Below are positions 24,598-50,612 of a stretch of DNA of 64,000 nucleotides, piece after piece. The first letter of the stretch is position 1. Every line of letters starts with the position of its first letter. The position numbers and the translations under genes are program-made. The notes under the pieces are model-generated. The model had not been told where the DNA came from and searched no databases. It was given only the letters and a program-made list of their open reading frames with translations. The stretch lies in the IMG/VR virus record IMGVR_UViG_3300048672_001051, positions 165,657 to 229,656 of that record; one strand, 5' to 3'.

Positions 24598-24612
24598 GAC
24601 CATTTTGCTTTT
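24598..24612 (-). promoter_or_regulatory. Phage promoter-like motif
   Basis: AAAAGCAAAATGGTC upstream of the RNAP2-containing operon. Confidence 0.7.
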
Positions 24613-24904
24613 GATTTTTAATTTAATTAATACATTAAAAAGCTTAATTATATTAATTAAGCATAGTATTGATTTAAGATAATTATTTAAATAAGTATAA
24701 TATTTATATAAGTTATTATTATATAAGATAAGTTAAATTAAGATTAGTATTCACCATAACTTTTAAATATAATCCTCTTAAATGTTTATCTTATTCTTGC
24801 TTTAACCAATGGATCTCGCTTTACAATTCTGTCCCATACTTTTTTAACCATTCCTTGTTAAATAACAATCATGAAAAAGTCGGAGCGAAGCGACGGCATT
24901 GCTT

Positions 24905-24935
24905 AAAAAAACAGGGGCCAAAGGCCCCTGTTTTT
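24905..24935. terminator. Bidirectional intrinsic terminator
   Basis: AAAAAACAGGGGCC aaa GGCCCCTGTTTTT. Confidence 0.8.
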
Positions 24936-25149
24936 ATGTTGTTAATGCCAGCAAAGCTTCCGCCATTGCAATTGCGTCTTTCTTCTTCTCAAAGACTAAG
25001 CCTTTAACGACAAGTTCATCATAAGTCTCTTCAGTGTAATACTGACAAGAGTAAGCTTACTCATCTTCTTTAACCTCTGGTTTAACAAGGACAGTACTGT
25101 ATGAAATACCAGCAAGTAACTTGATACGTTTACGTAAACTGATTGCCAT
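24934..25149 (-). pseudogene. Small gene with an internal in-frame TAA
   Basis: MAISLRKR...KEDE*AYSCQ...YDELVVKGLVFEKKKDAIAMAEALLALTT; GAGG SD; stop at 25057-25059. Confidence 0.55.
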
Positions 25150-25152
25150 AAG

Positions 25153-25686
25153 TCAATCCTCGCTACATTTTGGGTGATTAATCGCATTAGTTTTACGAAT
25201 GCGTTTGTACATCGAATCAAATTCAGATTTGCTTAAAACAACAACATTAAGTTTAGTCTTAAGCATACGTTTTAATCGACGTTTAACAGTTGAAATCCTC
25301 ATAGAGTAATTCAAATAAACACCTCGTACACGTCCAAATAATTCAGAATCATCTACAGATAAAGCATAAATGTATTCTACACATTTACGATTATATCCAT
25401 GATATTTCATGAATTCTTCTTCAGTCCAACCAACATCGTTATAATAACGAGGATCAACTTCAGTTCGCAAATTGCGTTTAGATACGTAATATAACGAGCC
25501 TTCAGCAATAAAAAGCGTATGTTTAGCTTTTGCAAATTTATGGCGATATTTACGAAGAACTTGGATATGATTACGCTTATCAGCATACATAGCCCAACCT
25601 TCATAATCACCAGAAAATTCACAAATTTTGTCAATGCCTGCCATGAATGTTACTCCATCATAAAGTAGTAGGATACAAATCTTCAT
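25153..25686 (-). CDS. Hypothetical phage protein
   Basis: Probable start MAGIDKICE after GGAG. Confidence 0.7.
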   Translation of the reverse strand: MKICILLLYDGVTFMAGIDKICEFSGDYEGWAMYADKRNHIQVLRKYRHKFAKAKHTLFIAEGSLYYVSKRNLRTEVDPRYYNDVGWTEEEFMKYHGYNRKCVEYIYALSVDDSELFGRVRGVYLNYSMRISTVKRRLKRMLKTKLNVVVLSKSEFDSMYKRIRKTNAINHPKCSED

Positions 25687-26068
25687 TCCATATCAGATCG
25701 TATTCTTCAGCTAAAGTTTCTAAGCTTTCTTTCCAGTTTTCAGGCTCAATGGTATCATGTATACACTGAAGTCTTCTCAATAAGTCTAAAATTATTCCAT
25801 CGTTTACAACAAATTCTTTACTTGAATATTGAAGTTTATCAATAGAGGATTGTTCGTATATTGCATTATATTGTCGGTCTGCAATTAAACATCCAACAGC
25901 ACAAGAAGTATTGTCAGGTCCTCGATAAAGACAGTGGATAATACCAGTGCCATCATTAAGGTGATTTGCAGACCGTTTCATCTGCGTTAACAGATGTTTC
26001 AATACATGGTCGAAAACATGTTGCACACCAAGTGCAACATGCTCTTTAAAAAGAAGTTGAGTTTCCAT
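25658..26068 (-). CDS. Conserved-looking phage protein (CxYR...CAVGCLI...LQxIHD)
   Basis: Cys/His motif pattern recalled from a common phage hypothetical family. Confidence 0.65.
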   Translation of the reverse strand: METQLLFKEHVALGVQHVFDHVLKHLLTQMKRSANHLNDGTGIIHCLYRGPDNTSCAVGCLIADRQYNAIYEQSSIDKLQYSSKEFVVNDGIILDLLRRLQCIHDTIEPENWKESLETLAEEYDLIWNEDLYPTTL

Positions 26069-26279
26069 TGCTTTGTTACTCCGTTACAGGTTGTTGTAGG
26101 GTTAGAGCCACGATTGTGTTAGTCCTTGATGGATACGTTTAACATATCAAACAGTTCCTTTACTGTAGGTCCTGTTGATGTTTCTTCGAATGCTAAGAAA
26201 TCTTCGAGTAATTCGTCAAGATCAGCTTCTGCTAATACTTGACGAGCTTCTTGAAGAATATCTAAAAGATATTCTTCCA

Positions 26280-26549
26280 TTAATAGTCCCCTTTATTCAA
26301 ACAACTGTTCGAATAAACTTGATTAAAATCAATAACTTCTTGCAAAGTTTGACCTTTTTTTACTTCATAAATAATAGTACAACTTTTATAAGTACTATTA
26401 ATATGAAAATCTTGAGAATTGTCCATAGAACTTAAGACAATAATACAAAAAATAGTTGCGATAAATAAAATTATCGCAACATTTTTAGATGAAAGCATAA
26501 GTCGATCCCTTAAAATTTGAATGTCTAGATAATTCACCGTTATCAACAA
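26280..26549 (-). CDS. Small exported or membrane protein
   Basis: Signal-like hydrophobic segment. Confidence 0.5.
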   Translation of the reverse strand: MLITVNYLDIQILRDRLMLSSKNVAIILFIATIFCIIVLSSMDNSQDFHINSTYKSCTIIYEVKKGQTLQEVIDFNQVYSNSCLNKGDY

Positions 26550-26748
26550 GTAATGTTAATAATCGTTGAATACCTCGTAAACTCGTCAAATGACCATACT
26601 CACGGAGTACAAATTCAATCTGACGAGTAGTCATAGGTGTTGGATGGTTTAACCTTACAATACTTAAAATATCATTAATGATAAGATAATTATCATAAGG
26701 TGTACTCTTAGCTACCATAAGACAAATCCTTAAAGTGAAGACTTCCAA
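26485..26748 (-). CDS. Winged-helix DNA-binding protein (putative)
   Basis: MTTRQI...SLRGIQRLLTLLVDNGEL pattern. Confidence 0.55.
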   Translation of the reverse strand: MEVFTLRICLMVAKSTPYDNYLIINDILSIVRLNHPTPMTTRQIEFVLREYGHLTSLRGIQRLLTLLVDNGELSRHSNFKGSTYAFI

Positions 26749-27617
26749 ATTGAAAATGAACCGCTTAAAGTGGCATCTTCAACATAGAAATTCTTTTTCA
26801 AAAATTCAGCAAGCTCACGCTCGCCAGAATTATAATCCCGATTACGATTTAAAAGATTGTCGGTAACAAACCAAGCTTTCGCATTAATTGCAGCCATCAA
26901 ATAAATTTGAATAGCTTCAATTTTAACGGCATCTTTACGATTGCCATTAATTGATACAAAAACTTTCTCAGTTTCAGCATAATTAAGCTTATTAGCCATA
27001 AGCCCATAATTACTACGATAAATATCCGTAGAAGAGCCTTCAGCACCAATACCAATGAAAGACTGAGAAATATCAGCTTTCTTTTGATCTTTAGCTGTAT
27101 AAATAGATTTTGTAGTAAGTTTAACAGGGCCACGATTGGCTGTTGCCGCAGCATAAATGCAATGGCAAAGCAATGGTGCACACCAGCAAACTAAATGTTT
27201 ATTACGCATATTTTTAATATTATTTTGAAAAACTAAATTAGTACTCCATAAAGATTTAAAATCATAAGCATAATGAGCAACAGCTTGATCACGAGTATCA
27301 ACCTTTTTCTCAGCAAGATTTTTTGTTGGCAAATGACTATAAGTATTGCCAAAAATACTAGGACGACCTAAATAAACACCATTTGAGTTATTTTTTTTAT
27401 TAAGAATTAAATGGCCATAAACAGCCATCAAATAATAAGAAATTTTATTACGTTGTTCAAACCACAAGTCATAAACTTGTTGAACTTTAGCAGGATTAGA
27501 TCCAGCAAAACCATTATATTGCATAATCAATTTAATAAAATCTTTACTATTAGAAACAGTAAGATTTCCTACTTCAAGAATAGGGTCAAAACCTAATACA
27601 GTTCGTTTAGCTGCCAT
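26730..27617 (-). CDS. DUF4326-domain fusion protein
   Basis: VYLGRPSIFGN...LVCWCAPLLCH plus an extra C-terminal domain. Confidence 0.7.
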   Translation of the reverse strand: MAAKRTVLGFDPILEVGNLTVSNSKDFIKLIMQYNGFAGSNPAKVQQVYDLWFEQRNKISYYLMAVYGHLILNKKNNSNGVYLGRPSIFGNTYSHLPTKNLAEKKVDTRDQAVAHYAYDFKSLWSTNLVFQNNIKNMRNKHLVCWCAPLLCHCIYAAATANRGPVKLTTKSIYTAKDQKKADISQSFIGIGAEGSSTDIYRSNYGLMANKLNYAETEKVFVSINGNRKDAVKIEAIQIYLMAAINAKAWFVTDNLLNRNRDYNSGERELAEFLKKNFYVEDATLSGSFSIWKSSL

Positions 27618-27684
27618 GTCAAAAATTCCTTAAAAGAGTCTGTCAAAATTAACAGACTTGATTGGGGGGGGGGGGTAGAGGTTG

Positions 27685-28197
27685 TTACACAGACTGGAAT
27701 TTTTTAATAAGGTATTCTTTTATGATAACAATACCTTTTAAAATCCAATCATACTGAGGTAACTCAGTCACACGACCAGCATAAACATAATAATGTTTAA
27801 ATGGTAGTGTAGAATCCGCCAGCATTCTAGCAAATTCAGGATAGGCTAATATTTTCGCTTGGATACACCGAAGAATATCTAAGCGAAATTGGTTTAAATC
27901 AACATGAGAATCATGAAGATTATAATTTTTTTGCATAGCTTGTCCAAACTTTTTAGCTTGAAAGCCATTAAGTTTGAAGATCGAGTCAAGTTGCAAAATA
28001 TCAGCACCTTGTACTAAATCTTTAAGCTTCATGTAATACCAATACTGTTCAACATTTAACAACTTAAAAGTTGTACCATGTCTGTCAGTATAGTCGAAAG
28101 GTGTGTGAGACATATTGGTTAAAAATCTACCCAAATCTGTAGCACCTTTGGTGTAAACATTTATATGTGTTACACCATCTTCAACCGGATTAGTCAT
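27685..28197 (-). CDS. NADAR-like phage protein
   Basis: DGVTHINVYTKGATDLGRFLTN...VEQYW...AKKFG...STLPFKHYY. Confidence 0.55.
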   Translation of the reverse strand: MTNPVEDGVTHINVYTKGATDLGRFLTNMSHTPFDYTDRHGTTFKLLNVEQYWYYMKLKDLVQGADILQLDSIFKLNGFQAKKFGQAMQKNYNLHDSHVDLNQFRLDILRCIQAKILAYPEFARMLADSTLPFKHYYVYAGRVTELPQYDWILKGIVIIKEYLIKKFQSV

Positions 28198-28204
28198 AAA
28201 TCAC

Positions 28205-28612
28205 CTATAAGTTTTTCCAATACTCAACGTTAGTGAACAAAGGATTTGATGAACGAATCTGTGTATCAATTTCACAAAAAACTTGATACATAGCTAATTT
28301 CAAAGATGAACGATCTACTTGAGAAGTAAATTTCAAGTCACCACATGAAATTTCAACAGTAACAGCAACTCGGCCATTATAATAATTCTTTGTATCAACT
28401 TTACGTGAACCTTTAAAATGTTCCCGTAAGAAGATATCCAAAGATAAACTTGTATTACAAGCAACTAAAAAATGCTTGCGTGTAGGTAAAGCTGAAACTT
28501 TAGACATAATAGTCTCCTTGAGTGATTGAACAAACATACATATGAGATTTATAAAATAAAATCCCATAAGTCTGTTTATTACAAAATAAATATATGTATA
28601 TATTTCAAGCAC
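28205..28612 (-). CDS. Hypothetical protein
   Basis: Probable start MSKVSA after AAGGAG. Confidence 0.6.
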   Translation of the reverse strand: MLEIYTYIYFVINRLMGFYFINLICMFVQSLKETIMSKVSALPTRKHFLVACNTSLSLDIFLREHFKGSRKVDTKNYYNGRVAVTVEISCGDLKFTSQVDRSSLKLAMYQVFCEIDTQIRSSNPLFTNVEYWKNL

Positions 28613-28634
28613 TTAGCTTTAAAACCAAATACCT
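28605..28634. repeat. 26-bp direct repeat copy 1, overlapping an IHF-like site
   Basis: GCACTTAGCTTTAAAACCAAATACCT identical at 28609 and 29185. Confidence 0.7.
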
Positions 28635-28648
28635 AATCTATATACATA

Positions 28649-29038
28649 TTAGAGTTCATTAGCCATAAGAACTAATAAACGTCTAAAATGAACAGAACCT
28701 TTATTTAAATAAGTTAATAATATAGTATAAGATTCATTAAGTAAACGTAATACAAGATCATCTCCAATATTATAAATATTAGATACAATAGTCATATTAC
28801 TATAGTCACGAGACAACATAATAATGAATGGTTTCTTATCAGAAGTCTGATATAACAAATATGTATATTTATCAGTGTTGAATGTATACAAACCAAACGG
28901 TAATTGATAAATATCTGCATCAGTAAAAATACGATTCAGATTTAAATTCCATTCAGTTTTGTACAAAATTTTGGCAGCCAAACTCACATTATGAAGAAAT
29001 GCAATTCTAGCTACAGCAGGCACCATTAAAGTAGCCAT
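28649..29038 (-). CDS. Hypothetical protein
   Basis: AGGAG SD; downstream of a promoter-like motif. Confidence 0.65.
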   Translation of the reverse strand: MATLMVPAVARIAFLHNVSLAAKILYKTEWNLNLNRIFTDADIYQLPFGLYTFNTDKYTYLLYQTSDKKPFIIMLSRDYSNMTIVSNIYNIGDDLVLRLLNESYTILLTYLNKGSVHFRRLLVLMANEL

Positions 29039-29078
29039 AATATAAACACTCCTAAAACATGGTATAGATTACATGAAA

Positions 29079-29092
29079 GACCATTTTGCTTT
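29079..29092 (-). promoter_or_regulatory. Phage promoter-like motif
   Basis: AAAGCAAAATGGTC. Confidence 0.65.
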
Positions 29093-29180
29093 ATAGGTAT
29101 TTACTATATAGAGAATAGATACCAATAAAACACAATAAACTATATCAGAATAACTCTGATATATAAAAAGCATAAACAAA

Positions 29181-29210
29181 TCAGGCACTTAGCTTTAAAA
29201 CCAAATACCT
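29181..29210. repeat. 26-bp direct repeat copy 2, overlapping an IHF-like site
   Basis: AATCAGGCACTTA fits WATCARnnnnTTR. Confidence 0.7.
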
Positions 29211-29223
29211 GATACAAGTTATA

Positions 29224-29529
29224 TCAACGTTTAACAGCTTCTGACATAACAACAGGATTAGAACGCATAGCAAGTACAGTCTGATCATTAGGTATAAAAA
29301 CATACCCAATAAGATTAATAACAAATGATACACAAGCAATCTTGAATGATAACAATAACTTATCAAGAGTACCATTAGCTTCAGCTTCAATCATTTCTTT
29401 AGAATCAAGAAACATATAGAAGAGAAACATAAGTATCATAGCAATAACAGTAAGAGTCAGTAAGACAGCAAACATCCAACTCAATGATTCAAACACATCA
29501 ATCATATAAGCAGTAAACAATAGGTCCAT
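29224..29529 (-). CDS. Membrane protein
   Basis: Two hydrophobic segments. Confidence 0.65.
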   Translation of the reverse strand: MDLLFTAYMIDVFESLSWMFAVLLTLTVIAMILMFLFYMFLDSKEMIEAEANGTLDKLLLSFKIACVSFVINLIGYVFIPNDQTVLAMRSNPVVMSEAVKR

Positions 29530-29634
29530 AACAAAATACCCCTATGGTAATAACAACAAAGGAAAGGCTCTAATAACAAAACTGTTAACAGAGCCATACT
29601 GATAATCAATAACAATACATTAAGAAACAATACT

Positions 29635-30198
29635 TTAAATACTAAACTCAGTGTTGATAAGCTTTACAGCTTGCTCAAGCATTGGTTGAATATTCAAGAC
29701 AGTTTCAACAGCGAGATTATTATCAAAAGATACTCTCACAACGCCATAGCCGTCTTTGCATAATTTAAATATTAAATAAGTACCATACTTATTAGCAGTA
29801 TGATACGAAACACTATTAGGCATTTTGTTACCAGAAGAAAATGTCATATAAAAATTTAATATATGACCATAGTCATTAAGTTCAAAAAGTGCAAAAGCAT
29901 CATCGGTACTGTAACGAATAGCTTTACCAGCTAGCTTAAAATTATCGCCACAAGAGATAGCTCTATTTTTAAGCCAATCGTAATTGCCACGGCAAATAGC
30001 CATAAAGGTATCATAATCTTTTGCTTTATAAGCAGTTTCAGCTGGCAAGTAATTACATGCACAAGCTTCAGACATCTTTGCTCGTTTCAAAATACGTTTA
30101 CAGACTTTGTCTAATTCCAAATCAGACTTAGGATCAATAGAATCATCAGTATTCATAGCAATAACTCCTTGTTCAATAGTGAGTAGGTTATAGTTCAA
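29635..30198 (-). CDS. Hypothetical protein
   Basis: Probable start MNTDD after AAGGAG. Confidence 0.65.
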   Translation of the reverse strand: MNYNLLTIEQGVIAMNTDDSIDPKSDLELDKVCKRILKRAKMSEACACNYLPAETAYKAKDYDTFMAICRGNYDWLKNRAISCGDNFKLAGKAIRYSTDDAFALFELNDYGHILNFYMTFSSGNKMPNSVSYHTANKYGTYLIFKLCKDGYGVVRVSFDNNLAVETVLNIQPMLEQAVKLINTEFSI

Positions 30199-30472
30199 TA
30201 GTATCTTTCAAAGTGTAGACAAATTCTACAACTTTGAACGTAAGACTTGTATCTGAGAATTCTTCATCAGACCAATATTGACCAGCATTGAGGTCTTTAC
30301 AAATCTCATCGAGATATTCTTTAGAACTTGCCAAGCAGCTCGATGTGATACGTTCTGTTGGCTTTGGTATGCTATACCGATCAATAGATACAGCAATAGA
30401 GCCATCAGTAGATACGATGGCGTAGAGTGGTAGGGTTTGCATGTTACAGTACCTTCTGTTGTAAATACACAT
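30188..30472 (-). CDS. Hypothetical protein
   Basis: ORF in operon. Confidence 0.6.
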   Translation of the reverse strand: MCIYNRRYCNMQTLPLYAIVSTDGSIAVSIDRYSIPKPTERITSSCLASSKEYLDEICKDLNAGQYWSDEEFSDTSLTFKVVEFVYTLKDTIEL

Positions 30473-30502
30473 ATAGGAACCATATAGATTCCTATAAGTT
30501 TA

Positions 30503-31237
30503 TCAACGATGAGTGATTTTTGAATCTTTCAAAGCCTTCTGAATTTCAGGCTTAACGATCATTTGTCGTAACCAATCTTCAACTGGTATCCAACCATCAG
30601 ATGTTTGGCGTACAGTTTGACTGTATGGTTCTACATAGCTTAACAAATAAACCATGAGTAATTGATAGAATTCTAAATCGAATTCATCACCAATATATTC
30701 ATATTGGTAAGCTTTATCACTGTGAGCTATTAATAGCTCACCAATGCTCTCGGGAAGCTTTAGACTTACTGAGAATTCATTGCAAGCAAGAATCTCCAGA
30801 TGAGTCTTATTGCGTAGTGCCAGAAGTTTTTCTGGCAACTCTTCGCCGTTGTCGAGAGAGTCTACTGAGTTAGTTATAGAACTCTTTTTTGAGTGAGTTA
30901 TAGAACTCTTTGAGTGAGTTAAAGAACTCTTTGAGTGAGTTACTTTCTTACTAAACTTCCATTTAAGATAATCCATTGGCCGAGGACAAGACATTTTCCT
31001 ATCCAAGGCTAGATCTGTGATACTGTATTCTTCAACTGTGCTAATAGTTTCAAACTTATTAGCCAGTTTTATAGCATCTTCGAGTTGATGGTATGCAGTA
31101 CTAGACTGCACACCATTAGTCAGAAGATACTTAACTAGGTATCTTTCTACCATAGTCATTTTGCTCCAAGAACAGTTTAAGATCATTAAGCACTTTTTTC
31201 CTATCAGGAAGTCCCAAATTAAATATTGGAATATCAT
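30503..31237 (-). CDS. Hypothetical protein with internal THSKSS repeats
   Basis: About 21-nt tandem repeat at ~30866-30943; probable start MTMVER. Confidence 0.65.
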   Translation of the reverse strand: MIFQYLIWDFLIGKKCLMILNCSWSKMTMVERYLVKYLLTNGVQSSTAYHQLEDAIKLANKFETISTVEEYSITDLALDRKMSCPRPMDYLKWKFSKKVTHSKSSLTHSKSSITHSKKSSITNSVDSLDNGEELPEKLLALRNKTHLEILACNEFSVSLKLPESIGELLIAHSDKAYQYEYIGDEFDLEFYQLLMVYLLSYVEPYSQTVRQTSDGWIPVEDWLRQMIVKPEIQKALKDSKITHR

Positions 31238-31736: not shown

Positions 31737-31769
31737 AATAACCTGCTCCTAAAGGGTTATATGAAGCCC

Positions 31770-33729: not shown

Positions 33730-34390
33730 AGGTTGCATTAGACTGAGTATTACTCTATAATGAATTTATCAGTAGGGCATACACACCTGTATGTATACCA
33801 AACTTATTGATAGAAACCCTTCTTGATTAGGGTAGTCTAAATAAAAGGTCAAGCTAGGTGAGGAACGTGCTCACCACCTAATAGTGCTGGCAATGTCGAG
33901 ACTGACAACCAGCGACGTGATTCACTCTATGAGTGTCATGGGCTTATCAACCACTTGCTGAAGAATATCCATACCAACCGTATTCAGCATCTTATAAGAG
34001 ATATAAGAACTACCTATTGTAGAGGTACAATAGGTTTTAGTGTCAATCAGGCTAATTAAGTGATTGAGGATATACTGTACTAAGGACAAGTCAGTTCCCA
34101 TAAGGGAGAGTTAAAACTCTATAATAAAGTAATTAACCACTACTTATATAAGCATTGTTGGGCTTACCGTGCTTGTAATATATCGTTATGGTAAGATATA
34201 TAACAAGGTAGTTATTATAACATCTATTAATATAATAACTATATAGACTATCTGTATTAACATAACTATTGATTAGTTTGTTAAGCTACAGGTATCTATC
34301 ACGGATATAGAGTCTTTAGTCACGTCTGGACTTTATGTTGGCATACATATAGAGACCATTTAGATCTCTATAAGTCTAACAACTAGCTGT
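33730..34390. ncRNA. Candidate large structured non-coding RNA
   Basis: About 660 bp with no ORF of 60 aa or more and more than 10 consecutive hairpins. Confidence 0.4.
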
Positions 34391-34834: not shown

Positions 34835-35398
34835 TTAAACTTTGAATTCACGAAACGTAATGCTAAGACGATCTTTAACATTAAGTTTGTAACCTATACT
34901 GTGCATGTATACACTTTGACAGCCGCCTGCCATTATGAATACATCACCATGTTTCAATTCTACACTGTCAGTTATAGGTGGTGGATAAATACCGCCTTTA
35001 ACAATCTCGTGGAAGTTGAATATACAACTTTCGCCTAACGATACAGATACAACTGCACTGCCTTTAACGAGAGTCGATTCTGAGTCTGAATGTGCGTTGA
35101 TACCGCTACGCTTACCAGCAGGATACCAATTCAATAAAGCACTATTGAAATTAGTACCAAGCATGGCATTTATTCGCTTCATAAGTAATTCAAGTGGCGG
35201 ATAAACAGACCAAGGGTAAGCTTTAGTTACTTGGCCAGAATACGGATAATCTACGCCAAGACTGCAGATACGACGTTCAGAGTTTTTAAAAGGAACCCAA
35301 GGGATCTTTTTAATAATCTGTTCGAGATGTCTGTCAGAATTTTGTATCACTACATCTGTTAAAAATCTTGAATCAGGAGATTTTTTTAACATGGTCAT
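34835..35398 (-). CDS. AlkB-family 2OG-Fe(II) oxygenase
   Basis: FNSALLNWY, HSD, VSVSLG, LKHGDVFIM, HSI, RLSITFR. Confidence 0.9.
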   Translation of the reverse strand: MTMLKKSPDSRFLTDVVIQNSDRHLEQIIKKIPWVPFKNSERRICSLGVDYPYSGQVTKAYPWSVYPPLELLMKRINAMLGTNFNSALLNWYPAGKRSGINAHSDSESTLVKGSAVVSVSLGESCIFNFHEIVKGGIYPPPITDSVELKHGDVFIMAGGCQSVYMHSIGYKLNVKDRLSITFREFKV

Positions 35399-43488: not shown

Positions 43489-43533
43489 AATCCCTCCATA
43501 CGGGGCCGTAGAAGCCCCGTAGAGCGACGTTAG

Positions 43534-43985: not shown

Positions 43986-44513
43986 TTAATGATACTTCAT
44001 TACAATAAAGGGATAGTCTTTACGTTTGGCCTTACCAGCCCATAAAGAGTCCCCAATAGCTGATTCAACACCGATATCTGGTACCAGTGTTTCATCAACA
44101 ACAATGAAGAAACGATCATCACCTTGTTCAGTATTGAAGTCATACTCTGCATGCAATGTAGCACCCACAGAGGTAACAACATATACATCGTATTTCTTCA
44201 ACTCTTCAACACAGAACTCGAGCAACTCCCAACGAAGGGCGCCATATACTGTATGTTTGCTCCAACGATAGGTATAGTCTCGTGTTTTTTCATACGCATC
44301 TTCAGCACTCACGCCATACATGCCAGAAGGAACTGGATAACGTTTATCACCAGAGTGTTTAGGCCATTTCTTCATAACTTTAGCCAATAACTTGCCCATA
44401 TTTCCTCCGTGGCAAGTTATTGTTTCAGCAACTAAGTTACAGATTCCACTCTTTTTGTCAGGCCTGCGTTTAACATAGACTAAGCTCTCGCTTAATTCAT
44501 TTACAATATCCAT
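43986..44513 (-). CDS. Hypothetical phage protein
   Basis: WPKHSGDKRYPVP...YGALRWELL; AGGAG SD. Confidence 0.65.
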   Translation of the reverse strand: MDIVNELSESLVYVKRRPDKKSGICNLVAETITCHGGNMGKLLAKVMKKWPKHSGDKRYPVPSGMYGVSAEDAYEKTRDYTYRWSKHTVYGALRWELLEFCVEELKKYDVYVVTSVGATLHAEYDFNTEQGDDRFFIVVDETLVPDIGVESAIGDSLWAGKAKRKDYPFIVMKYH

Positions 44514-44523
44514 AACAATACTC

Positions 44524-44733
44524 CTATGGCAGATGAGGGACTACGATTGAACCTTTGTGAACATCTTTAAGGATATTCACAGCTTCATCCAGTGTGTGAA
44601 TATTAGCTTTGTGCTGATAATATTCTTCACCACCTTCATGTACAACAATAGTGAATCGACCACCTTGCCACAGGACAGTGGATTGTTCAACCCAAGCTAA
44701 GATGCAAGGTCTTACCGCTATTGATTCAAACAT
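44524..44733 (-). CDS. Hypothetical protein
   Basis: GGAG SD; overlap-coupled. Confidence 0.55.
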   Translation of the reverse strand: MFESIAVRPCILAWVEQSTVLWQGGRFTIVVHEGGEEYYQHKANIHTLDEAVNILKDVHKGSIVVPHLP

Positions 44734-44980
44734 TACTTTGCTCCAAGTGGTAGTGCATGTTTTCTAACAACATTGCACATTGAGACTCAGTAAGCTCAGG
44801 TTTAGCTTGGATGATGCGATGTTGACCGTTGCTCAAGTGTATTGCGATAGTCGCTAAACGCCGACCATCTTCGTAAATTGTGCCTGGAGTGTATTCCAGA
44901 GCAACAACATGTTGTGAAACAGGGCGCCAATAGAGCTGATCCTTGGCAAACTGCTTAAGCTCAATAATGAAATTGGACAT
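44726..44980 (-). CDS. Hypothetical protein
   Basis: GAGG SD. Confidence 0.6.
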   Translation of the reverse strand: MSNFIIELKQFAKDQLYWRPVSQHVVALEYTPGTIYEDGRRLATIAIHLSNGQHRIIQAKPELTESQCAMLLENMHYHLEQSNV

Positions 44981-44989
44981 AGTACCACC

Positions 44990-45403
44990 TCACTTGAAAA
45001 ATGATAACAAAGATTTTGGGATGTCGAGACTCTTGTGAGTGCTCAATACACTGTATAGCGAAGTATCCAGCGTGTGACCCCAGCCTGAAACAAAGTCATA
45101 TACAGCAATTTGCATACTGTATTTTTCCGCATTGATGAGGATGCCTGGACCCCCATCAGTCTCAACTACACCACGCAGTTGCTGATGTAGATATTTCAAA
45201 TCAATCTTCTTGTGCACCAATACAAGGATTGGATTCACACGGCTTGTCTTGATAAGAATACCGTACACCTCTAACGGCTGTGCCGAGTTGTCACGATCCT
45301 TAAAGCATTTAGCCTGAACATCAATAGTCAGGCGATCTGCATCTAAAAATAGTGTCGGAGGAACAGCATCAATAACAGCGTTAAATTCTTGCATGACAGT
45401 CAT
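44990..45403 (-). CDS. Hypothetical protein
   Basis: ORF in operon. Confidence 0.6.
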   Translation of the reverse strand: MTVMQEFNAVIDAVPPTLFLDADRLTIDVQAKCFKDRDNSAQPLEVYGILIKTSRVNPILVLVHKKIDLKYLHQQLRGVVETDGGPGILINAEKYSMQIAVYDFVSGWGHTLDTSLYSVLSTHKSLDIPKSLLSFFK

Positions 45404-45525
45404 CCTAAAATGAGATAGAGGGTTAATAACACACTCAGAACTATGAGTAGATTTCTGAATGTATTAAGCCGTTTTGCATGAGCATTGAGAATACGCTCAA
45501 GCTCTTTACTATAGTCGTCAGTCAT
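45400..45525 (-). CDS. 41-aa membrane-anchored protein (not in ORF track)
   Basis: AGGAG SD; MTDDYSKELER...LLIVLSVLLTLYLILG; ATGA overlap. Confidence 0.6.
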   Translation of the reverse strand: MTDDYSKELERILNAHAKRLNTFRNLLIVLSVLLTLYLILG

Positions 45526-45630
45526 CAGAGACTACTCCTAGTAGTTTTAAGAAAGGTTTACACCTTAAGATTATACTGGCAGGTGCTTACCAGTGAAGAC
45601 TATTATCATAGCTATTTAATCCTCATTAAA

Positions 45631-45651
45631 GACCATTTCGCTTGTGCTTTT
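45631..45651 (-). promoter_or_regulatory. Phage promoter-like motif (variant)
   Basis: AAAAGCACAAGCGAAATGGTCTTTAATGAGGAT. Confidence 0.65.
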
Positions 45652-45659
45652 GAACACAG

Positions 45660-46100
45660 TTATTCAGTGGTCGCGTAGGCAGACGGGATTTTGCTTAAGT
45701 CAATATTAACTTCGCGGCGCGGGTTTTGACTTTGAACTAGATGCCCTGTGCTGCTAATAGCGCTAGACGCCGCTTTAGCTTGCTTAATCACTGCAATAAA
45801 CTCTTCACGAGATAGTGTAGGGATTTCGCTAAGAAAGACAGGTGAGCCGTTATGGAATACACCTTGAATTACCTTAGAGCCGCCTAAGTAGTCTTGGCTT
45901 TGGGTAATACAGGTATAAGGCCCCTTGTTATACTTGTAGACCTTAACAAAGTTACTTGAATAAATAGCAGTAACTTTACTTGATCCAGTAATACCACAGA
46001 TGTCCACTACTGCGATATTTGTATCGTCAGTAGTTAAGTCATATGTGAGTACACTGGCAAAAATAGAAGCCAAAACAACACACAGTATTAGTTTAAACAT
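45660..46100 (-). CDS. Exported hypothetical protein
   Basis: N-terminal signal peptide; GAGGAG SD. Confidence 0.65.
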   Translation of the reverse strand: MFKLILCVVLASIFASVLTYDLTTDDTNIAVVDICGITGSSKVTAIYSSNFVKVYKYNKGPYTCITQSQDYLGGSKVIQGVFHNGSPVFLSEIPTLSREEFIAVIKQAKAASSAISSTGHLVQSQNPRREVNIDLSKIPSAYATTE

Positions 46101-46173
46101 GGTAAGTCTCCTCAGACTTGGTTGAAAGTTTATTCACATGTGGGAACTATAAAAATTCCCACAAATTAATAAA

Positions 46174-46665
46174 CTAAAAAGGTACTTCGAAGCCAGTGTA
46201 TTGACCTGCTTTAATAGCAGAGTCTAAATCACTGTAACGAAAATCTCTTACATGGTCGTTAGAAAATCCTTTACCAACAATCCAATAAATAGTTGGATAC
46301 GCTTGGATTAGAATTTTCTTTTCACCTGAATAGGCTTCGTATGCAAGGTATGCTTCGAAAGGCAGGTCGTACACAGTTAAGCTATTAGCTCTACGGTACT
46401 CAATAACTTCATTAAGCCTAGAGATCTCCAACACAATGCACTCTGCAGGGCTAGTCAAGTTATCAACTAGAGCATGTGACAGCATATGTATATGTTCTAA
46501 ACTACCCGAGCCCATGTACACTATCTGACCATCCTTATGTTCCATTTCATACATATCTGGAAAACAAGAAGATTCCCACTCAAGCTCACCTGCAATATCG
46601 TCGAAGTAAGCACTTGATTCACCTTCGTACATCAGGCTTATTTTAAAATCTGGATGTAAATTCAT
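46174..46665 (-). CDS. Hypothetical acidic protein
   Basis: AAGGAG SD. Confidence 0.65.
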   Translation of the reverse strand: MNLHPDFKISLMYEGESSAYFDDIAGELEWESSCFPDMYEMEHKDGQIVYMGSGSLEHIHMLSHALVDNLTSPAECIVLEISRLNEVIEYRRANSLTVYDLPFEAYLAYEAYSGEKKILIQAYPTIYWIVGKGFSNDHVRDFRYSDLDSAIKAGQYTGFEVPF

Positions 46666-46725
46666 AACAATGCTCCTTGGTTATAATTGTCGTTACTCCG
46701 GAATTAGAGTAACGACATGAAAAGG

Positions 46726-47217
46726 TTAGACCGATGGTTTGTGCAAAGACTTACGAATAGTCTTTGACACCTTAATTGCATCTTTACACCGTAAAAATAA
46801 CAACCCATCAGCTAAAAGCTGTTGATAACTGGGACAACTGGGATTGACTGTTAGCGTCTTGTAAAACGCATGTTGATCCCAGATCTCTTTTTGTACCAAA
46901 TGTAACACAGGCGTATAAACCTGTTTAATGGTACTGCCAAGCACCGTGTCAACACGAATCGGTGCAATAATAGAGCCGTTACCAACATCCATAGACTCCG
47001 GCTTTGTTGGATAACATACCAAGTCGCAGTGCCAAGAGATGTTAGCCATGAGGTATTCCATTGAAGTAACCTCTGTGAACTCTTTGTGCTTGCGTGGCTT
47101 AATCCACAGCTTGTGCTGCGAGCTCATCAACCAGAGGCCTATTTGGCCTCTGTGTTTTGCGAATGATTGACGCTTAGTTGCTTTCATAACAATACTCCAA
47201 AGTGCGACATTGCACAC
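46726..47217 (-). CDS. Hypothetical protein
   Basis: Probable start MKATK after GGAG. Confidence 0.6.
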   Translation of the reverse strand: MCNVALWSIVMKATKRQSFAKHRGQIGLWLMSSQHKLWIKPRKHKEFTEVTSMEYLMANISWHCDLVCYPTKPESMDVGNGSIIAPIRVDTVLGSTIKQVYTPVLHLVQKEIWDQHAFYKTLTVNPSCPSYQQLLADGLLFLRCKDAIKVSKTIRKSLHKPSV

Positions 47218-47427
47218 ATGTACGACCCATAATAAGAGTCGTACAAGTTTGAAATGTCAATCTTCTTCAAGATACAAATAGTCCATTGCGCTATTGTAGT
47301 CGATAACTACAGCTGCAATTTGACCATGAGTAAATTTACCTGAGAACATCTCAAATAAATCTTCTTCACAAGCACCGTTCTCCAGTGCTTGTATTATTTC
47401 TGAAGTGTCCATAGCGTCAGTCCTTTG

Positions 47428-47781
47428 CTAGTAGTCATCACCGTATTCGTTGTCTAGAGCCCTTCTATAACAAGGGTTACAGACTTCGTGTACTGGACCA
47501 CCACCTTCGCTAGGATCGCTGCGGAAATGAACGCGTAAGCCGCTCTTATGGCACCAATCACAAGTACCTGTAGGATTCTCATCCTCAGCCTCTTGCGCGG
47601 CCTTATAAGCGTCTACACACTCTTGACACATAGGGTGATACTCAGACCCCCAAGAGTCTGTCTCACCTACAAGAGTCAAAACCGCAGGCCGATTTTCATG
47701 CCCATCGGTGTGACATAGACTCCCCCACTGTTTTGCAACAGCAGACACTTCTATTAACATACCTGTGATATGTCTTCTCAT
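47428..47781 (-). CDS. Zn-finger (CxxC) protein
   Basis: CQEC, CDWC, CNPC. Confidence 0.65.
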   Translation of the reverse strand: MRRHITGMLIEVSAVAKQWGSLCHTDGHENRPAVLTLVGETDSWGSEYHPMCQECVDAYKAAQEAEDENPTGTCDWCHKSGLRVHFRSDPSEGGGPVHEVCNPCYRRALDNEYGDDY

Positions 47782-47990
47782 GCCTTAACTCCTTTAGCAA
47801 TGCATTGACAAGTATTATCTAGGTTGCCACAAAACTGGCAACCAGACTCGTAGATCGCAAGATGATAATTCAACTGCAACTCGAGCACTTCAATTTCTTG
47901 AAGTGCTTTCTCCCAAGCTGGCCCACACTCTTGCGGAAGCTTTTCTGCGAGGTCTGCAATCTTGGCCTCAATTTCATATGACGGATTCAT
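47778..47990 (-). CDS. Small Cys-rich protein
   Basis: CQFCG...CQC; AGGAG SD. Confidence 0.6.
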   Translation of the reverse strand: MNPSYEIEAKIADLAEKLPQECGPAWEKALQEIEVLELQLNYHLAIYESGCQFCGNLDNTCQCIAKGVKA

Positions 47991-48015
47991 ACTTAACTCC
48001 TAAGCGAGCTGATCC

Positions 48016-48411
48016 TCATAACAGACCATTTTGCTTTTGCTTTTGATTCGCTCCGGCGATACCAGTACAGTTATCCTGCGCTGCTTTAAGCCGCTGAATA
48101 TACACTGTTAAGTCCTGGCCGGTCTTTACGCGAACGTTATTAATAAACAAGGCGATAACACCTTGAGCGAATGAGATGCCTAGCCAGACATTAGCCTTCT
48201 TAGCCAAATAGGCTTCGTCAGAAGGTTTGATGCCAGCCGCTTCCAGCACCAAGTCAGGCGTTACGCCGCTACTAGAGGGCTCGAACGCACCGAAGAGTAT
48301 CGGCACAAAATCATTCGCGCCATACTCTTCGGTGGTATGAGAATCTGCAAAGCATACCATTATGGTGCTCCTAATAATTAACCTTGAAGTGTTTAGCTTC
48401 AAGTGCCGCAA
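48016..48411 (-). CDS. Hypothetical protein
   Basis: Probable start MVCFAD after AGGAG; C-terminus runs through the promoter-like motif. Confidence 0.55.
   Translation of the reverse strand: MRHLKLNTSRLIIRSTIMVCFADSHTTEEYGANDFVPILFGAFEPSSSGVTPDLVLEAAGIKPSDEAYLAKKANVWLGISFAQGVIALFINNVRVKTGQDLTVYIQRLKAAQDNCTGIAGANQKQKQNGLL
48024..48044 (-). promoter_or_regulatory. Phage promoter-like motif
   Basis: AAAAGCAAAAGCAAAATGGTCTGTTATGAGGAT. Confidence 0.75.
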
Positions 48412-48676
48412 TCACATCCGCTTTGTACTGCGGATGATCTTCGGCAGAGTCACTGATGTTCACCTCTTGAGTAGTAGAGGTGAAATGATTCTGCCACGAA
48501 TCATCTGGCCACTGGGCCTGTGGATCGTTACAAGCTGAGTCGTGGCAAGATGCCGACCATAGCTCGTAGCAAGCACTGGCCACTTCGGACGGCGTACCAC
48601 CGTCCGCTATTATTACATCCAAAGCCTTCTTAGCTTTGGCATTTTGATTCTGATGGTGAGTCAGGTTAATTTTCAT
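48371..48676 (-). CDS. Hypothetical protein
   Basis: GAGG SD. Confidence 0.6.
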   Translation of the reverse strand: MKINLTHHQNQNAKAKKALDVIIADGGTPSEVASACYELWSASCHDSACNDPQAQWPDDSWQNHFTSTTQEVNISDSAEDHPQYKADVIAALEAKHFKVNY

Positions 48677-48740
48677 GATGAATCCTCAAGAGCTTTTAGA
48701 AGGGAGCTCTTATTATAAACCCTAAAATCCGAGTGCAGCG

Positions 48741-49004
48741 TTAGTTCAGAAGAAGAAACTCTGGGTCTACTAATTCTTCGATGTAGACCTCCAAAGTTTC
48801 TTCCGCTTTATACCGGCGCACGATGTCGTGCTTGATCCCTGAAGCGACTACCAGAAAATGGTAGTCCCGCTCAAATATCAGGAATGTGCCATCGACGTTT
48901 ATGTCGATGTCGCGCGCTTTAAATGCAGCGCGCAGTTCTTGCACTTGTTGCTCGTTCATGTATTTTCTCCTTATTAAGATGGGCATGACCCCGAATAATA
49001 ACAA
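48741..49004 (-). CDS. Hypothetical protein
   Basis: Probable start MNEQQ after TAAGGAG. Confidence 0.6.
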   Translation of the reverse strand: MLLFGVMPILIRRKYMNEQQVQELRAAFKARDIDINVDGTFLIFERDYHFLVVASGIKHDIVRRYKAEETLEVYIEELVDPEFLLLN

Positions 49005-49015
49005 ACCTCATAACA

Positions 49016-49030
49016 GACCATTTTGCTTTT
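49016..49030 (-). promoter_or_regulatory. Phage promoter-like motif
   Basis: AAGATCAAAAGCAAAATGGTCTGTTATGAGG. Confidence 0.75.
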
Positions 49031-49182
49031 GATCTTTATGGGACGCCAGTGTTTAACGGTACATTGGAAACCGATAGGTTATTATTTTCATAATAATTCC
49101 TCTTTGTTAGCAATCAAACATATAAGTACTATTATCAAATACTTATATGTTTGATTGAGGGTTGTGAGAAACCCTCAAAATA

Positions 49183-49368
49183 TTACTTCTTCCGTCTAGG
49201 TCGCCGACCTTTCCCTGACCCCTTTTTAAGGATCAGGGTTTTAACAATACGATGCTTCCCAAGGCGCATATCACGGGAGGCATAGTACTCTCCGTTATAT
49301 TCAGCTGGCCAAATACTCCAGTCTATTCCTTTGTATTCATCGGGTCCTTCCATTACAAGGACCCCCAA
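49183..49368 (-). CDS. Small basic protein
   Basis: Lys/Arg-rich tail. Confidence 0.5.
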   Translation of the reverse strand: MGVLVMEGPDEYKGIDWSIWPAEYNGEYYASRDMRLGKHRIVKTLILKKGSGKGRRPRRKK

Positions 49369-49646
49369 CCATTAGCCACAGCCCAGTCTCGAGCTGCCTC
49401 AACAGTCTGGAAAGTGTTAAAGGCTACTTTGCTGTAGCCTTTTGAGCGGAAAGGAGAGCACAAATACGTGCTCAAAATTCCTTTAACATGGAGAGTGAAT
49501 ACACCTTCACTCTCTTTCCGGACTATGAATCCGTTAAAACTCCAAGTTTCCATAATGAAACTCCTTAATAAGAACAGGCTCATTACACCTGTACACACTT
49601 TTGGAATGGAGAGTGTGCAAAAGAACTCCAAGGAATTATTCCACAT
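49353..49646 (-). CDS. Hypothetical protein
   Basis: Probable start METWS after TAAGGAG. Confidence 0.55.
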   Translation of the reverse strand: MWNNSLEFFCTLSIPKVCTGVMSLFLLRSFIMETWSFNGFIVRKESEGVFTLHVKGILSTYLCSPFRSKGYSKVAFNTFQTVEAARDWAVANGWGSL

Positions 49647-49732
49647 ATGGATATTATAAAACTAATACCCATAAATTGAATAACTTAAGTAGTTCTTTAT
49701 TTATACTGCCGAACTACGTGAGCAGTCTTCTT

Positions 49733-50035
49733 TTAAAGACCGAAGAGGTCTGCAATGGCATTAGCCACTGCAAGAAGGTCTTGGTCAATGCAGCTCAGGG
49801 GTGTGTCCCCTAAGCTAACGTGTCCGTCAATGACGACCCACAAATAGCGGCCTTCGTCGCCAAAGGTGACAAAGATTTCCGCCATGCCGCCAGCCTCTGC
49901 AGCTTCGACGAGTTGCTCGAAGCTTGCGACCTTTCCGTCAATCTCGACGGACTTTATCAGGCCTTGCAGTTGGTTAATATCCATAATGTATTCTCCAAAA
50001 TGATGGGCATCACCCCAATGTTGACACTTTACCAA
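49733..50035 (-). CDS. Hypothetical acidic protein
   Basis: Probable start MDINQ after GGAG. Confidence 0.6.
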   Translation of the reverse strand: MVKCQHWGDAHHFGEYIMDINQLQGLIKSVEIDGKVASFEQLVEAAEAGGMAEIFVTFGDEGRYLWVVIDGHVSLGDTPLSCIDQDLLAVANAIADLFGL

Positions 50036-50148
50036 TGCGGCAGGTGGTCAACGATAACCCGTATTACAATTATAAGAACCAACTAAGGATTCTCATAAGT
50101 GTAACATGTATGCAATTATACTCCCGCATACAAGGGGAGTTTCGCATG

Positions 50149-50334
50149 TTAGGGATAAACACGAACCCCTAACATGCAAGCCTTCACCTCGATCTCGCGA
50201 GGTGAAGGAGGTAATTGCGTGAACTGGGCGGGGTGGACTTCCCCCAAGACCAGTTCGACCATTGCGTCATACTCGGCCTGACGCGCGGCCTTTTCAGACT
50301 TGCGGGAAGCCTGAAAGAGATCTATGCTGAACAT
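50149..50334 (-). CDS. Hypothetical protein
   Basis: AGGAG SD; downstream of a promoter-like motif. Confidence 0.6.
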   Translation of the reverse strand: MFSIDLFQASRKSEKAARQAEYDAMVELVLGEVHPAQFTQLPPSPREIEVKACMLGVRVYP

Positions 50335-50370
50335 AGAGCACTCCTAAGAAAGAGGACAATCCTCACAAAA

Positions 50371-50391
50371 GACCATTTTGCTTTTGCTTTT
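50371..50391 (-). promoter_or_regulatory. Phage promoter-like motif
   Basis: AAAAGCAAAAGCAAAATGGTCTTTTGTGAGGAT. Confidence 0.75.
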
Positions 50392-50541
50392 GGTCTCGCG
50401 GAGGTACGAATTGGTGAGTTGGTTACAAGTTAGATTTCCCGTCTAACCAACTCACCGCACTATTGTTTCTGCTTCGGATCTTGATCTTGATCTTGATCCT
50501 AGTAGAAACAACCTACAGGGTTTGTGGCAACCCTCGTAACA

Positions 50542-50612
50542 GACCATTTTGCTTTTGCTTTTGCTTTGGCTTTTGCTTTTGCTTTTGCTTTTGCTTTTGC
50601 TTTTGCTTTTGC
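50542..50612 (-). promoter_or_regulatory. Phage promoter-like motif with 10 tandem AAAAGC hexamers
   Basis: Plus strand GACCATTTT then (GCTTTT)x10 at 50551-50610, one copy GCTTTG. Confidence 0.75.

Follow-up and report, generated by a model that had tools for sequence, protein, structure and literature searches.

Ten copies of a conserved motif as the likely promoter set of a candidate RNA polymerase in a 230-kb freshwater phage

Several phages transcribe part of their genes with polymerases of their own. In T7, the polymerase gene appears to be followed by tandem promoters (phi1.1A/phi1.1B), and the same contiguous promoter (class II/III) is probably repeated before gene blocks. The Thermus phage P23-45 has two very divergent single-chain two-barrel RNA polymerases, gp96 (virion) and gp64 (non-virion), each with its own promoter motif, while the host polymerase transcribes the middle and late genes (PMC10770324). 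YonO of the Bacillus prophage SPbeta is a PF05183-like single-chain polymerase of 839 aa that uses one promoter of undefined sequence for a single late operon, and its only mapped start site lies just downstream of yonO, ahead of a non-coding RNA (PMC5467207). The non-virion polymerases of the jumbo phages AR9 and phiKZ, on the other hand, are split into 4-5 subunits and need a specificity subunit, and their late promoter is very short (AACA-N6-TA/G) and is read in the template strand of uracil-containing DNA (PMC5449584, PMC4666361).

Here we describe a locus in a freshwater phage of 230 kb in which ten copies of a motif of 25-30 bases are found downstream of a large polymerase-like gene, RNAP1, and in which a second such gene, RNAP2, lies in the unit headed by the last copy. 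The analysed stretch, hereafter the window, is 64,000 nucleotides long (positions 165,657 to 229,656 of IMG/VR record IMGVR_UViG_3300048672_001051). A preliminary description, made from the sequence alone, had listed the ten copies, noted that they are co-oriented with the genes and absent upstream of RNAP1, and inferred that they are promoters of RNAP1 with a T7-like logic but a two-barrel enzyme. Our analysis confirms the ten sites, and every part of the interpretation that could be tested by computation held up. The features of the locus are collected in Table 1.

Table 1. Coordinates of the genes, motif copies and associated elements in the window. Anchors are the first A of AATGGTC on the minus strand.
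Position (strand)	Feature	Observations
51125..54760 (-)	RNAP1, 1211 aa, candidate single-chain two-barrel RNA polymerase	NDADGD at about aa 948-953; KHPVIM at about aa 857
50650..51078 (-)	Small gene (142 aa) between RNAP1 and the first motif copy	Conserved in the 89%-identical relative
50613..50637 (-)	Hairpin with a 10-bp stem that closes the RNAP1 transcription unit, directly before the (AAAAGC) array	A hairpin of different sequence sits at the same place in relative L052
50547..50612 (-)	(AAAAGC)x11 array that runs into the first motif copy	Tandem Repeats Finder: period 6, 11 copies, 96% match; two independent assemblies break here
50530..50561 (-)	Motif copy 1	Anchor 50548; 46.8 bits; no ORF follows
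50391..50529 (-)	Non-coding, strongly structured spacer between copies 1 and 2; may be a leader or a small RNA	(GATCAA)x4 at 50477-50498 and a 13-bp hairpin; MFE -71.3 kcal/mol against -42.8 +/- 4.0 for shuffles, z = -7.2; no Rfam family matches
50359..50390 (-)	Motif copy 2	Anchor 50377; 47.0 bits; ATG 43 nt downstream
49004..49035 (-)	Motif copy 3	Anchor 49022; 47.3 bits
48012..48043 (-)	Motif copy 4	Anchor 48030; 49.5 bits; equal to the consensus; ATG 40 nt downstream
45619..45650 (-)	Motif copy 5	Anchor 45637; 43.9 bits
43181..43212 (-)	Motif copy 6	Anchor 43199; 44.6 bits
39605..39636 (-)	Motif copy 7	Anchor 39623; 38.2 bits
37472..37503 (-)	Motif copy 8	Anchor 37490; 37.1 bits
34342..34373 (-)	Possible weak eleventh copy	GATC-TAAATGGTCTCT, lacking AAAAGC; intergenic; identical in relative L071
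29067..29098 (-)	Motif copy 9	Anchor 29085; 28.9 bits, the weakest; no counterpart seen in relative L071
24905..24935 (-)	Canonical hairpin-plus-T-run terminator about 300 nt upstream of the last copy	Relative L071 carries a compensatory stem change
24586..24617 (-)	Motif copy 10	Anchor 24604; 41.8 bits; heads the gene run 24520 to 17155 that ends with RNAP2; core conserved in relative L071
17155..20778 (-)	RNAP2, 1207 aa, distant paralogue of RNAP1	SDCDGD at about aa 906-911
16462..16578 (-)	Two copies of ACAATAACGAGTCATTTTT (16560-16578 and 16462-16480) flanking a hairpin-plus-T-run; candidate RNAP2-specific promoter pair ahead of the low-GC paralogue array	The second copy abuts ATG 16461; the same core directly follows the RNAP2 homologue of locus L072

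A pattern search with up to 3 mismatches found 8 copies of the motif, against 0.10 expected by chance, and anchoring on AATGGTC recovered all ten. The consensus is atcAAAAGCAAAATGGTCTgT.ATGAGGat. A position weight matrix built from the ten sites scores them 29-49 bits (15-48 bits when each site is left out in turn), whereas the next best site on either strand of the window scores 9.6 bits. Each anchor is 6 nt from the coordinate given in the preliminary description. All ten copies are on the minus strand and co-oriented with the genes, and they lie in intergenic DNA, which makes up about 11% of the window, or in the last 15 nt of the upstream ORF. Nine of them are followed by a start codon 40-112 nt downstream, and in the copies that we read a GGAG-type ribosome site precedes it. 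The first copy is followed instead by a non-coding spacer of 170 nt and then by the second copy. None lies upstream of RNAP1, where the best score in 51-64 kb is 4.7 bits, and the first copy is found 577 nt after the RNAP1 stop. The AAAAGC unit occurs 1-11 times, but AAGATC, which the preliminary description had included in the consensus, precedes only 2-3 copies. The exact 16-mer AAAAGCAAAATGGTCT occurs six times in the 229,656-bp source contig, and all six are inside the window. A possible weak eleventh copy, GATCTAAATGGTCTCTATATG, lies at 34360.

RNAP1 belongs to an unannotated family of about 40 cluster representatives. In 36 sequences of this family the signature KHPxLFxES ... LQNDxDGDLxR, with D938, D940, G941 and D942 in the 1200-residue numbering, is invariant or nearly so, and the DxDGD loop lies in a beta-prime-like context. 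In 19 sequences of the RNAP2 family, which counts 23 proteins, the corresponding D907, D909, G910 and D911 are invariant. The two families are homologous (hhalign of the RNAP1 profile against RNAP2, E 7e-6; family against family, probability 99.55% and E 2e-23 over 224 columns). Clusters carrying PF05183, the YonO/QDE-1 type, make up 67 of 100, 89 of 100 and at least 60 of 100 protein-language-model neighbours for RNAP1, its catalytic part and RNAP2, respectively. However, no significant match of RNAP1 to any known polymerase was found by Pfam, PHROGs, PDB sequence or profile search, and the alignment to YonO, although collinear over four motifs, is not significant (hhalign E 0.15). AlphaFold2 modelled the whole protein with pLDDT 78.9 and the core with pLDDT 83.6. 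A Foldseek search with the full-length model gave nothing below E 1, while the best hit of the core model is chain d of the AR9 non-virion polymerase (7s01_d; E 0.03, probability 0.66), and largest-subunit or two-barrel polymerase chains (beta-prime, Rpb1, poxvirus and gp96) are among the weak hits. The predicted order of strand, helix, DxDGD loop and strand seems to agree with that of the beta-prime barrel. Assignment to the two-barrel superfamily is therefore likely but not proven.

The new evidence is comparative. In four other phages (loci L058, L063, L068 and L070), whose RNAP1-family polymerases are only 25-50% identical to one another and to that of the window, 32 further copies of a related motif were found (9, 4, 11 and 8, respectively), giving 42 sites in five phages. 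All are on the strand of the RNAP1-family gene and downstream of it, and the first site is 30-1605 nt after the stop codon. Tandem arrays of 2-6 copies occur, and in two of the phages the sites start 30-60 nt after the stop codon. In L068, 10 of 11 copies fall between called genes. The phages carry lineage-specific variants around the shared core AAATGnTyTG. The motif was not seen next to several other family members (L053-L057, L067 and L069), but their flanks are short and specificity may have diverged. Moreover, in the close relative L071 the flanks of the orthologous site are nearly as conserved as the motif, and hence that comparison does not show selection on the motif.

We suggest that the ten sites are promoters of a middle-gene class, read by the phage's own RNAP1 as a single-chain polymerase of the two-barrel (beta/beta-prime-like) superfamily. 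A T7-like cascade is the best reading and seems probable, although it is inferred without transcript evidence (no RNA run was listed for this sequence, and two DNA runs gave no relevant information). The RNAP1 operon (about 59.2 to 50.65 kb, minus strand) carries no copy of the motif, so another polymerase must transcribe it, which could be the host enzyme or a virion-delivered one. The operon ends at a hairpin. Once made, RNAP1 would recognise a contiguous element of about 25-30 bp with the core AAAAGCAAAATGGTCT, start transcription near the 3' end of that element, and express about 26 kb of small genes from ten entry points. The last copy follows a canonical terminator and an AT-rich spacer, so the downstream unit needs a new promoter, and the motif is the conserved, recurrent element there. 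The gene run that it heads reaches RNAP2 with no intergenic terminator-like hairpin. RNAP2 then probably uses a different promoter, ATAACGAGTCATTTT, placed right after its own gene, to express the downstream array of paralogous genes. This motif also follows a 42%-identical homologue in another jumbo phage.

The best alternative, which we consider unlikely, is that the sites are promoters read by a different enzyme, either RNAP2 delivered from the virion, as in phiKZ, P23-45 or crAss-like phages, or the host polymerase redirected by a phage factor, in which case the cascade would run in another order. Phages with two polymerases usually package one of them (PMC10770324; PMC7598289), the genes behind the motif are small ORFans of the kind typical of early regions, and something other than RNAP1 must transcribe the RNAP1 operon. 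Co-location cannot tell RNAP1 apart from another factor encoded in the same module, for instance a 728-aa protein that is conserved next to RNAP1-family genes and could be a specificity factor. However, the motif follows RNAP1-family genes in five phages, RNAP2 has its own distinct conserved motif directly after its gene in this phage and in L072, and the 18 kb around the L072 RNAP2 homologue hold no RNAP1-type motif. The consensus has no bipartite -35/-10 form with a TTGACA/TATAAT pair, and sigma-70-like hits in the region are no more frequent than in shuffles and do not coincide with the sites.

It is still less likely that the motif acts in RNA, as a processing or stabilising site or as an antitermination site of the nut/put type in a long transcript that starts upstream. 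Strict co-orientation and intergenic placement would fit RNA-level signals as well, and the motif holds an ATG and, in the relatives, a minimal ATG-NNN-TGA frame. On the other hand, the motif has no hairpin character, its variable distance to the start codon indicates that it is not a translational operator, the last copy lies behind a strong terminator and 300 nt of spacer, tandem arrays of 4-6 copies within 200 nt (L058 and L070) are hard to explain as processing sites, and the motif is absent from the RNAP1 operon itself. The least likely alternative, that the sites bind a DNA-binding regulator or are iterons of a replication origin, is suggested by tandem arrays next to microsatellite-like repeats, (AAAAGC)x11 and (GATCAA)x4 at 50.5 kb, by the six copies in L058 and by the primary origin of T7, which seems to coincide with its tandem promoters after gene 1, but the copies are spread over 26 kb, one per gene block, always on the coding strand and at promoter-like distance from start codons, a strand rule that iterons and operators do not need, and an origin role for the first tandem pair would add to promoter function rather than replace it.

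A broader reading is possible but remains tentative. This phage and its relatives may carry a previously unrecognised, deeply divergent branch of single-chain two-barrel RNA polymerases, present as two paralogous families, each reading its own long, T7-style promoter placed directly after its own gene (core AAATGnTyTG for RNAP1, and for RNAP2 the motif ATAACGAGTCATTTT, which abuts the start codon and would give near-leaderless mRNAs). Together they would form a largely host-independent two-step transcription cascade, and the lineage-specific promoter variants would amount to a natural set of orthogonal polymerase-promoter pairs. The tandem pair, the (AAAAGC)x11 array and the structured RNA after RNAP1 might also serve as a transcription-primed replication origin, as is probably the case in T7.

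The logic of such a system is known from T7, P23-45 and YonO, while the enzyme family and the promoter consensus are new. As is apparently the case in T7, one contiguous element of about 23-30 bp is repeated before gene blocks and co-oriented with them, is absent upstream of the polymerase gene, and has its first copies in tandem just after that gene and a terminator-like hairpin, with a single polypeptide as the presumed reader. However, RNAP1 is not a T7-type (Pol A-like) polymerase, as it has no Pfam or PHROGs hit at E 0.01 and carries a DxDGD beta-prime-like loop, the consensus is unrelated, and the genome of 230 kb has a second, paralogous polymerase, so the resemblance is in genome logic only. 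P23-45 likewise carries two very divergent single-chain DxDGD polymerases of extremely low similarity to known polymerases, each associated with its own DNA motif and together forming a cascade, but we detected no sequence relation to either (gp96 appears only as a non-significant fold hit at E 2.4-9), neither polymerase of our phage is fused to a tape-measure protein, and the motifs differ. YonO shares the single chain with a DxDGD loop, and its start site ahead of a non-coding RNA resembles copy 1 followed by a structured spacer, but the proteins described here are about 1200 aa long and there are ten defined copies of the motif. With AR9 and phiKZ our phage shares the jumbo-phage context and a transcription that would be independent of the host enzyme, whereas here there is one chain and a long element.

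Almost all genes up to about 59.2 kb are on the minus strand, so transcription runs from high to low coordinates. GC content falls steadily along that direction across window 1-64000, from about 0.50 in the RNAP1 operon through 0.33-0.44 in the motif-driven region to 0.26-0.29 in an array of paralogous genes. No nucleotide or protein match to the window, which is the last 64 kb of a 229,656-bp IMG/VR contig from a freshwater metagenome, was found in the phage genome collection. Only a few genes could be annotated, among them a PHROG annotated as histidyl-tRNA synthetase, a 2OG-Fe(II) oxygenase and a PF10118 metal-dependent hydrolase. The oxygenase recurs next to RNAP1-family genes in the loci L053 and L054, and the hydrolase recurs near the RNAP2 homologue in L072, a 216-kb sewage phage contig. 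The RNAP1 operon and the plus-strand genes are separated by a 609-nt non-coding divergent region with AT-rich direct repeats (ATTTTTTAAAGGA x2 and a 16-mer x3) and odd G/C-rich blocks, which is the likely site of the earliest promoters.

The motif is real and sharply bounded. The pattern proposed in the preliminary description, searched with up to 3 mismatches, gives 8 hits against 0.10 expected, and anchoring on AATGGTC recovers all ten of the copies claimed there. A weight matrix built from the ten sites scores them 29-49 bits (leave-one-out scores 15-48 bits), while the next best position on either strand of the window scores 9.6 bits. The consensus is atcAAAAGCAAAATGGTCTgT.ATGAGGat, with AAATGGTCT as its core. 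All ten sites are on the coding strand, in intergenic DNA or in the last 15 nt of the preceding ORF, although intergenic DNA makes up only about 11% of the window. Nine copies lie 40-112 nt before a start codon, which in the copies we read is preceded by a GGAG-type ribosome site, and none lies in the 13 kb upstream of the RNAP1 stop codon. The exact 16-mer occurs six times in the whole 230-kb contig, all within the window. A weak eleventh candidate, the degenerate copy GATCTAAATGGTCTCTATATG, is found in a 290-nt intergenic gap and is 100% identical over 64 nt in the close relative L071. A k-mer search of intergenic DNA for other motif classes in the window gave only AT-rich words, and a TTCCTTTAAAGGAA-like palindrome is at chance level. 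The ATG within the motif is not preceded by a ribosome site.

Copy 1 is fused to an (AAAAGC)x11 array, which together with (GATCAA)x4 flanks it. This copy is followed not by a gene but by a 170-nt non-coding spacer that folds far better than shuffled sequence (-71 kcal/mol, z = -7.2), includes a 13-bp hairpin and matches no Rfam family, and copy 2 comes next; the spacer may be a small RNA or a leader. The Logan assemblies of the source sample and of the 89%-identical relative (L052) both break in the (AAAAGC) array. Sequencing reads placed on 45100-51000 added only scattered fragments from run X2 that miss the candidate promoters. Two 94%-identical copies of a 33-nt hairpin-forming element, one of them about 95 nt upstream of motif copy 9, may represent a repeated terminator. 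A 21-nt tandem repeat of 3.5 copies (TGAGTGAGTTATAGAACTCTT) was also observed inside a 244-aa ORF.

Coordinates of the features discussed in the text, in the window and in related loci
Sequence	Position	Strand	Feature
Window	1204-1836	minus	PHROG annotated as histidyl-tRNA synthetase
Window	2892-16230	minus	Head-to-tail array of paralogous genes
Window	16462-16480	minus	ATAACGAGTCATTTT, candidate RNAP2 promoter
Window	16560-16578	minus	ATAACGAGTCATTTT, candidate RNAP2 promoter
Window	17155-20778		RNAP2
Window	21151-21424		274-nt AT-rich gap
Window	24604		Motif copy 10
Window	28605-28637		33-nt hairpin-forming element
Window	29181-29213		33-nt hairpin-forming element
Window	30866-30942		21-nt tandem repeat
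Window	34342-34373	minus	Weak eleventh candidate (34360)
Window	34835-35398	minus	2OG-Fe(II) oxygenase
Window	50391-50529	minus	Spacer between motif copies 1 and 2
Window	50477-50498		(GATCAA)x4
Window	50547-50612		(AAAAGC)x11
Window	51125-54760		RNAP1
Window	55218-57404	minus	728-aa protein just upstream of RNAP1
Window	59248-59856		609-nt divergent region
Window	62316-63071	plus	PF10118 metal-dependent hydrolase
L053	5994-9623		RNAP1-family paralogue, 1209 aa
L053	10001-13324		RNAP1-family paralogue, 1107 aa
L056	7784-9964		Homologue of the 728-aa protein
L071	about 1010-1070		Counterpart of the weak eleventh candidate
L072	1-147		21-nt repeat at contig end
L072	8156-8175		Motif after the RNAP2 homologue

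Pfam, PHROGs and PDB sequence or profile searches gave no match for RNAP1, RNAP2 and most of their neighbours. A full HMMER scan of 1.84 billion representatives, however, revealed an unannotated family of about 40 cluster representatives around RNAP1, 1000-1230 aa long, 20-30% identical and derived from freshwater, marine, wastewater and sewage samples. The alignment shows the invariant blocks GxCRxVSxxxxGGIKxT, KHPxLFxES, LQNDxDGDLxR, AKxxVGxYT and VQxxAMNxIKH, of which the second and third seem to resemble RAPTLHRLG and NADFDGDQM of the beta-prime subunit. These two also align collinearly with RSPHLYREH and LQFDNDGDK of YonO, though without statistical significance (hhalign E 0.15), and hhalign against both YonO and a YonO-family profile was not significant. 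An apparent hit between the RNAP2 and YonO profiles (E 1.7e-15) aligns an unconserved tail and is an artefact. One relative, L053, carries two RNAP1-family paralogues side by side, the first of which matches the family profile with an hhalign E of 1e-21. RNAP2 has its own family of 23 proteins, and the two family profiles align over 224 columns around the DxDGD loop (probability 99.55%, E 2e-23).

AlphaFold2 with the RNAP1 family alignment gave confident models (pLDDT 78.9 for the whole protein and 83.6 for the core), in which the DxDGD loop lies between a short helix and a strand, probably the same arrangement as in the beta-prime barrel. Foldseek on the whole model gave no usable hit in the PDB, and against BFVD the two significant hits were unnamed or labelled "minor tail protein", with crAss-like phage proteins only at E 0.2-0.8, a result that we could not interpret. 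On the core model the top hit was a chain of the AR9 phage polymerase (E 0.03, probability 0.66), and the weak hits included largest-subunit or two-barrel polymerase chains. Protein-language-model neighbours are dominated by PF05183 clusters, the YonO/QDE-1 family (67 of 100 for RNAP1, 89 of 100 for its catalytic part with a top score of 0.90, and at least 60 of 100 for RNAP2). We conclude that both proteins are very probably two-barrel polymerases of an undescribed branch, although formal membership by sequence or fold statistics is not established. The 728-aa protein just upstream of RNAP1 has a homologue in the same position next to a distant RNAP1-family gene in the locus L056 (35% identity over the C-terminal 230 aa, E 1e-35), where a second paralogue lies beside it; its function is unknown, but it could be a polymerase partner.

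The main new result comes from the contigs that encode family members. A de novo repeat search showed that four of these carry repeated motifs downstream of the polymerase gene, namely L058 (9 copies of AATTGAAATGTTTTGA), L063 (4 copies of AAATTGAAATGgTTtGA), L068 (11 copies of AATTTAAATGCTTTGAg) and L070 (8 copies of TCGAAATGtT.tGAGAgg). With the window this makes 42 sites, all on the strand of the polymerase gene and downstream of it, and the first site is found 30 nt (L070), 60 nt (L058), 578 nt (window), 1536 nt (L063) or 1605 nt (L068) after the stop codon. Tandem arrays of 2-6 copies follow the gene, and in L068 10 of 11 copies fall between called genes. The variants share AA..nAAATGnTyTGw with AAAAGCAAAATGGTCTGT of the window, while most copies in the relatives also contain a minimal frame ATG-NNN-TGA that is absent from the window's version. 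The polymerases of these phages, sampled from freshwater, wastewater and other environmental metagenomes, are only 25-50% identical to each other. A motif that stays next to a diverging polymerase gene, and drifts with it, is what a cognate promoter would do. Six other loci showed no such motif, but their downstream flanks are short (0.2-3.7 kb) and specificity may differ.

The RNAP1 unit ends with a 10-bp hairpin just before the (AAAAGC) array, and L052 has a hairpin of different sequence at the same place. Copy 10 lies 300 nt behind a canonical hairpin-plus-T7 terminator, which shows a compensatory stem change in L071. The orthologous copy in L071 keeps an invariant 21-nt core, but because its flanks are equally conserved this comparison is uninformative about selection on the motif. 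From copy 10 the genes run to RNAP2 with no intergenic terminator-like hairpin, although an AT-rich gap on the way could hold another promoter. The layout after RNAP2 repeats the layout after RNAP1, with a hairpin, a small gene and then two copies of ACAATAACGAGTCATTTTT flanking a hairpin, the second abutting an ATG. In L072, whose RNAP2 homologue is 42% identical, ACTATAACGAGTCATTTTATG lies 59 nt after the stop codon of the homologue and abuts the next gene. Each polymerase gene is therefore followed by its own conserved motif. In two of the three cases the second motif abuts the next ATG with no ribosome site, and it is a candidate RNAP2 promoter that would give near-leaderless mRNAs. A search for ATAACGAGTCATTTT in IMG/VR gave 98 single hits, but none of the loci fetched for these hits encodes a polymerase homologue and we take them as chance. 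The end of the L072 contig consists of about 6.5 exact copies of a 21-nt repeat, which may be a genome terminus. In the window, the motif of RNAP2 heads a tightly packed, low-GC (about 0.27) array of about 33 paralogous genes of about 130 aa (117-161 aa, median pairwise identity 29%), with almost no intergenic gaps and no family annotation in the few members scanned against PHROGs.

The best reading is the one proposed in the preliminary description, in which the sites are RNAP1-specific promoters in a T7-like layout, leading to RNAP2; we consider this likely, although promoter function is inferred, there are no RNA data and none of this replaces start-site mapping. It is unlikely, but possible, that another polymerase reads the sites. 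Phages with two polymerases often package one of them (PMC10770324, PMC7598289), and RNAP2 may therefore act at the start of the next infection rather than late in the current one, in which case the RNAP1 operon might be read by it rather than by the host enzyme. RNA-level signals, and even more so regulator sites or iterons, are improbable; these fit the strand rule or the arrays but not both, and explain neither the terminator-then-motif layout nor the absence of the motif from the polymerase operon.

Phage-encoded polymerases with their own promoters are a known strategy, but the known single-chain two-barrel examples are few (YonO, crAss-like gp66, and P23-45 gp64 and gp96), and their promoters are either undefined, as for YonO, or less sharply defined than the consensus found here. 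What is new is the protein branch, which is invisible to standard annotation, together with a long, information-rich consensus with natural variants in relatives and the pairing of two paralogous families. This makes polymerase-promoter recognition in this ancient fold directly testable and could also yield new orthogonal transcription parts. For annotation, it would split 26 kb of ORFan genes into transcription units and assign a probable function to two 1200-aa "hypothetical" proteins of a jumbo phage. The logic seems to match that of T7, but the enzyme is not T7-like. The single start site of YonO lies just downstream of its gene, and its promoter is undefined (PMC5467207). The enzymes of AR9 and phiKZ are multisubunit and use very short promoters, AACA-N6-TA/G in AR9 (PMC5449584).
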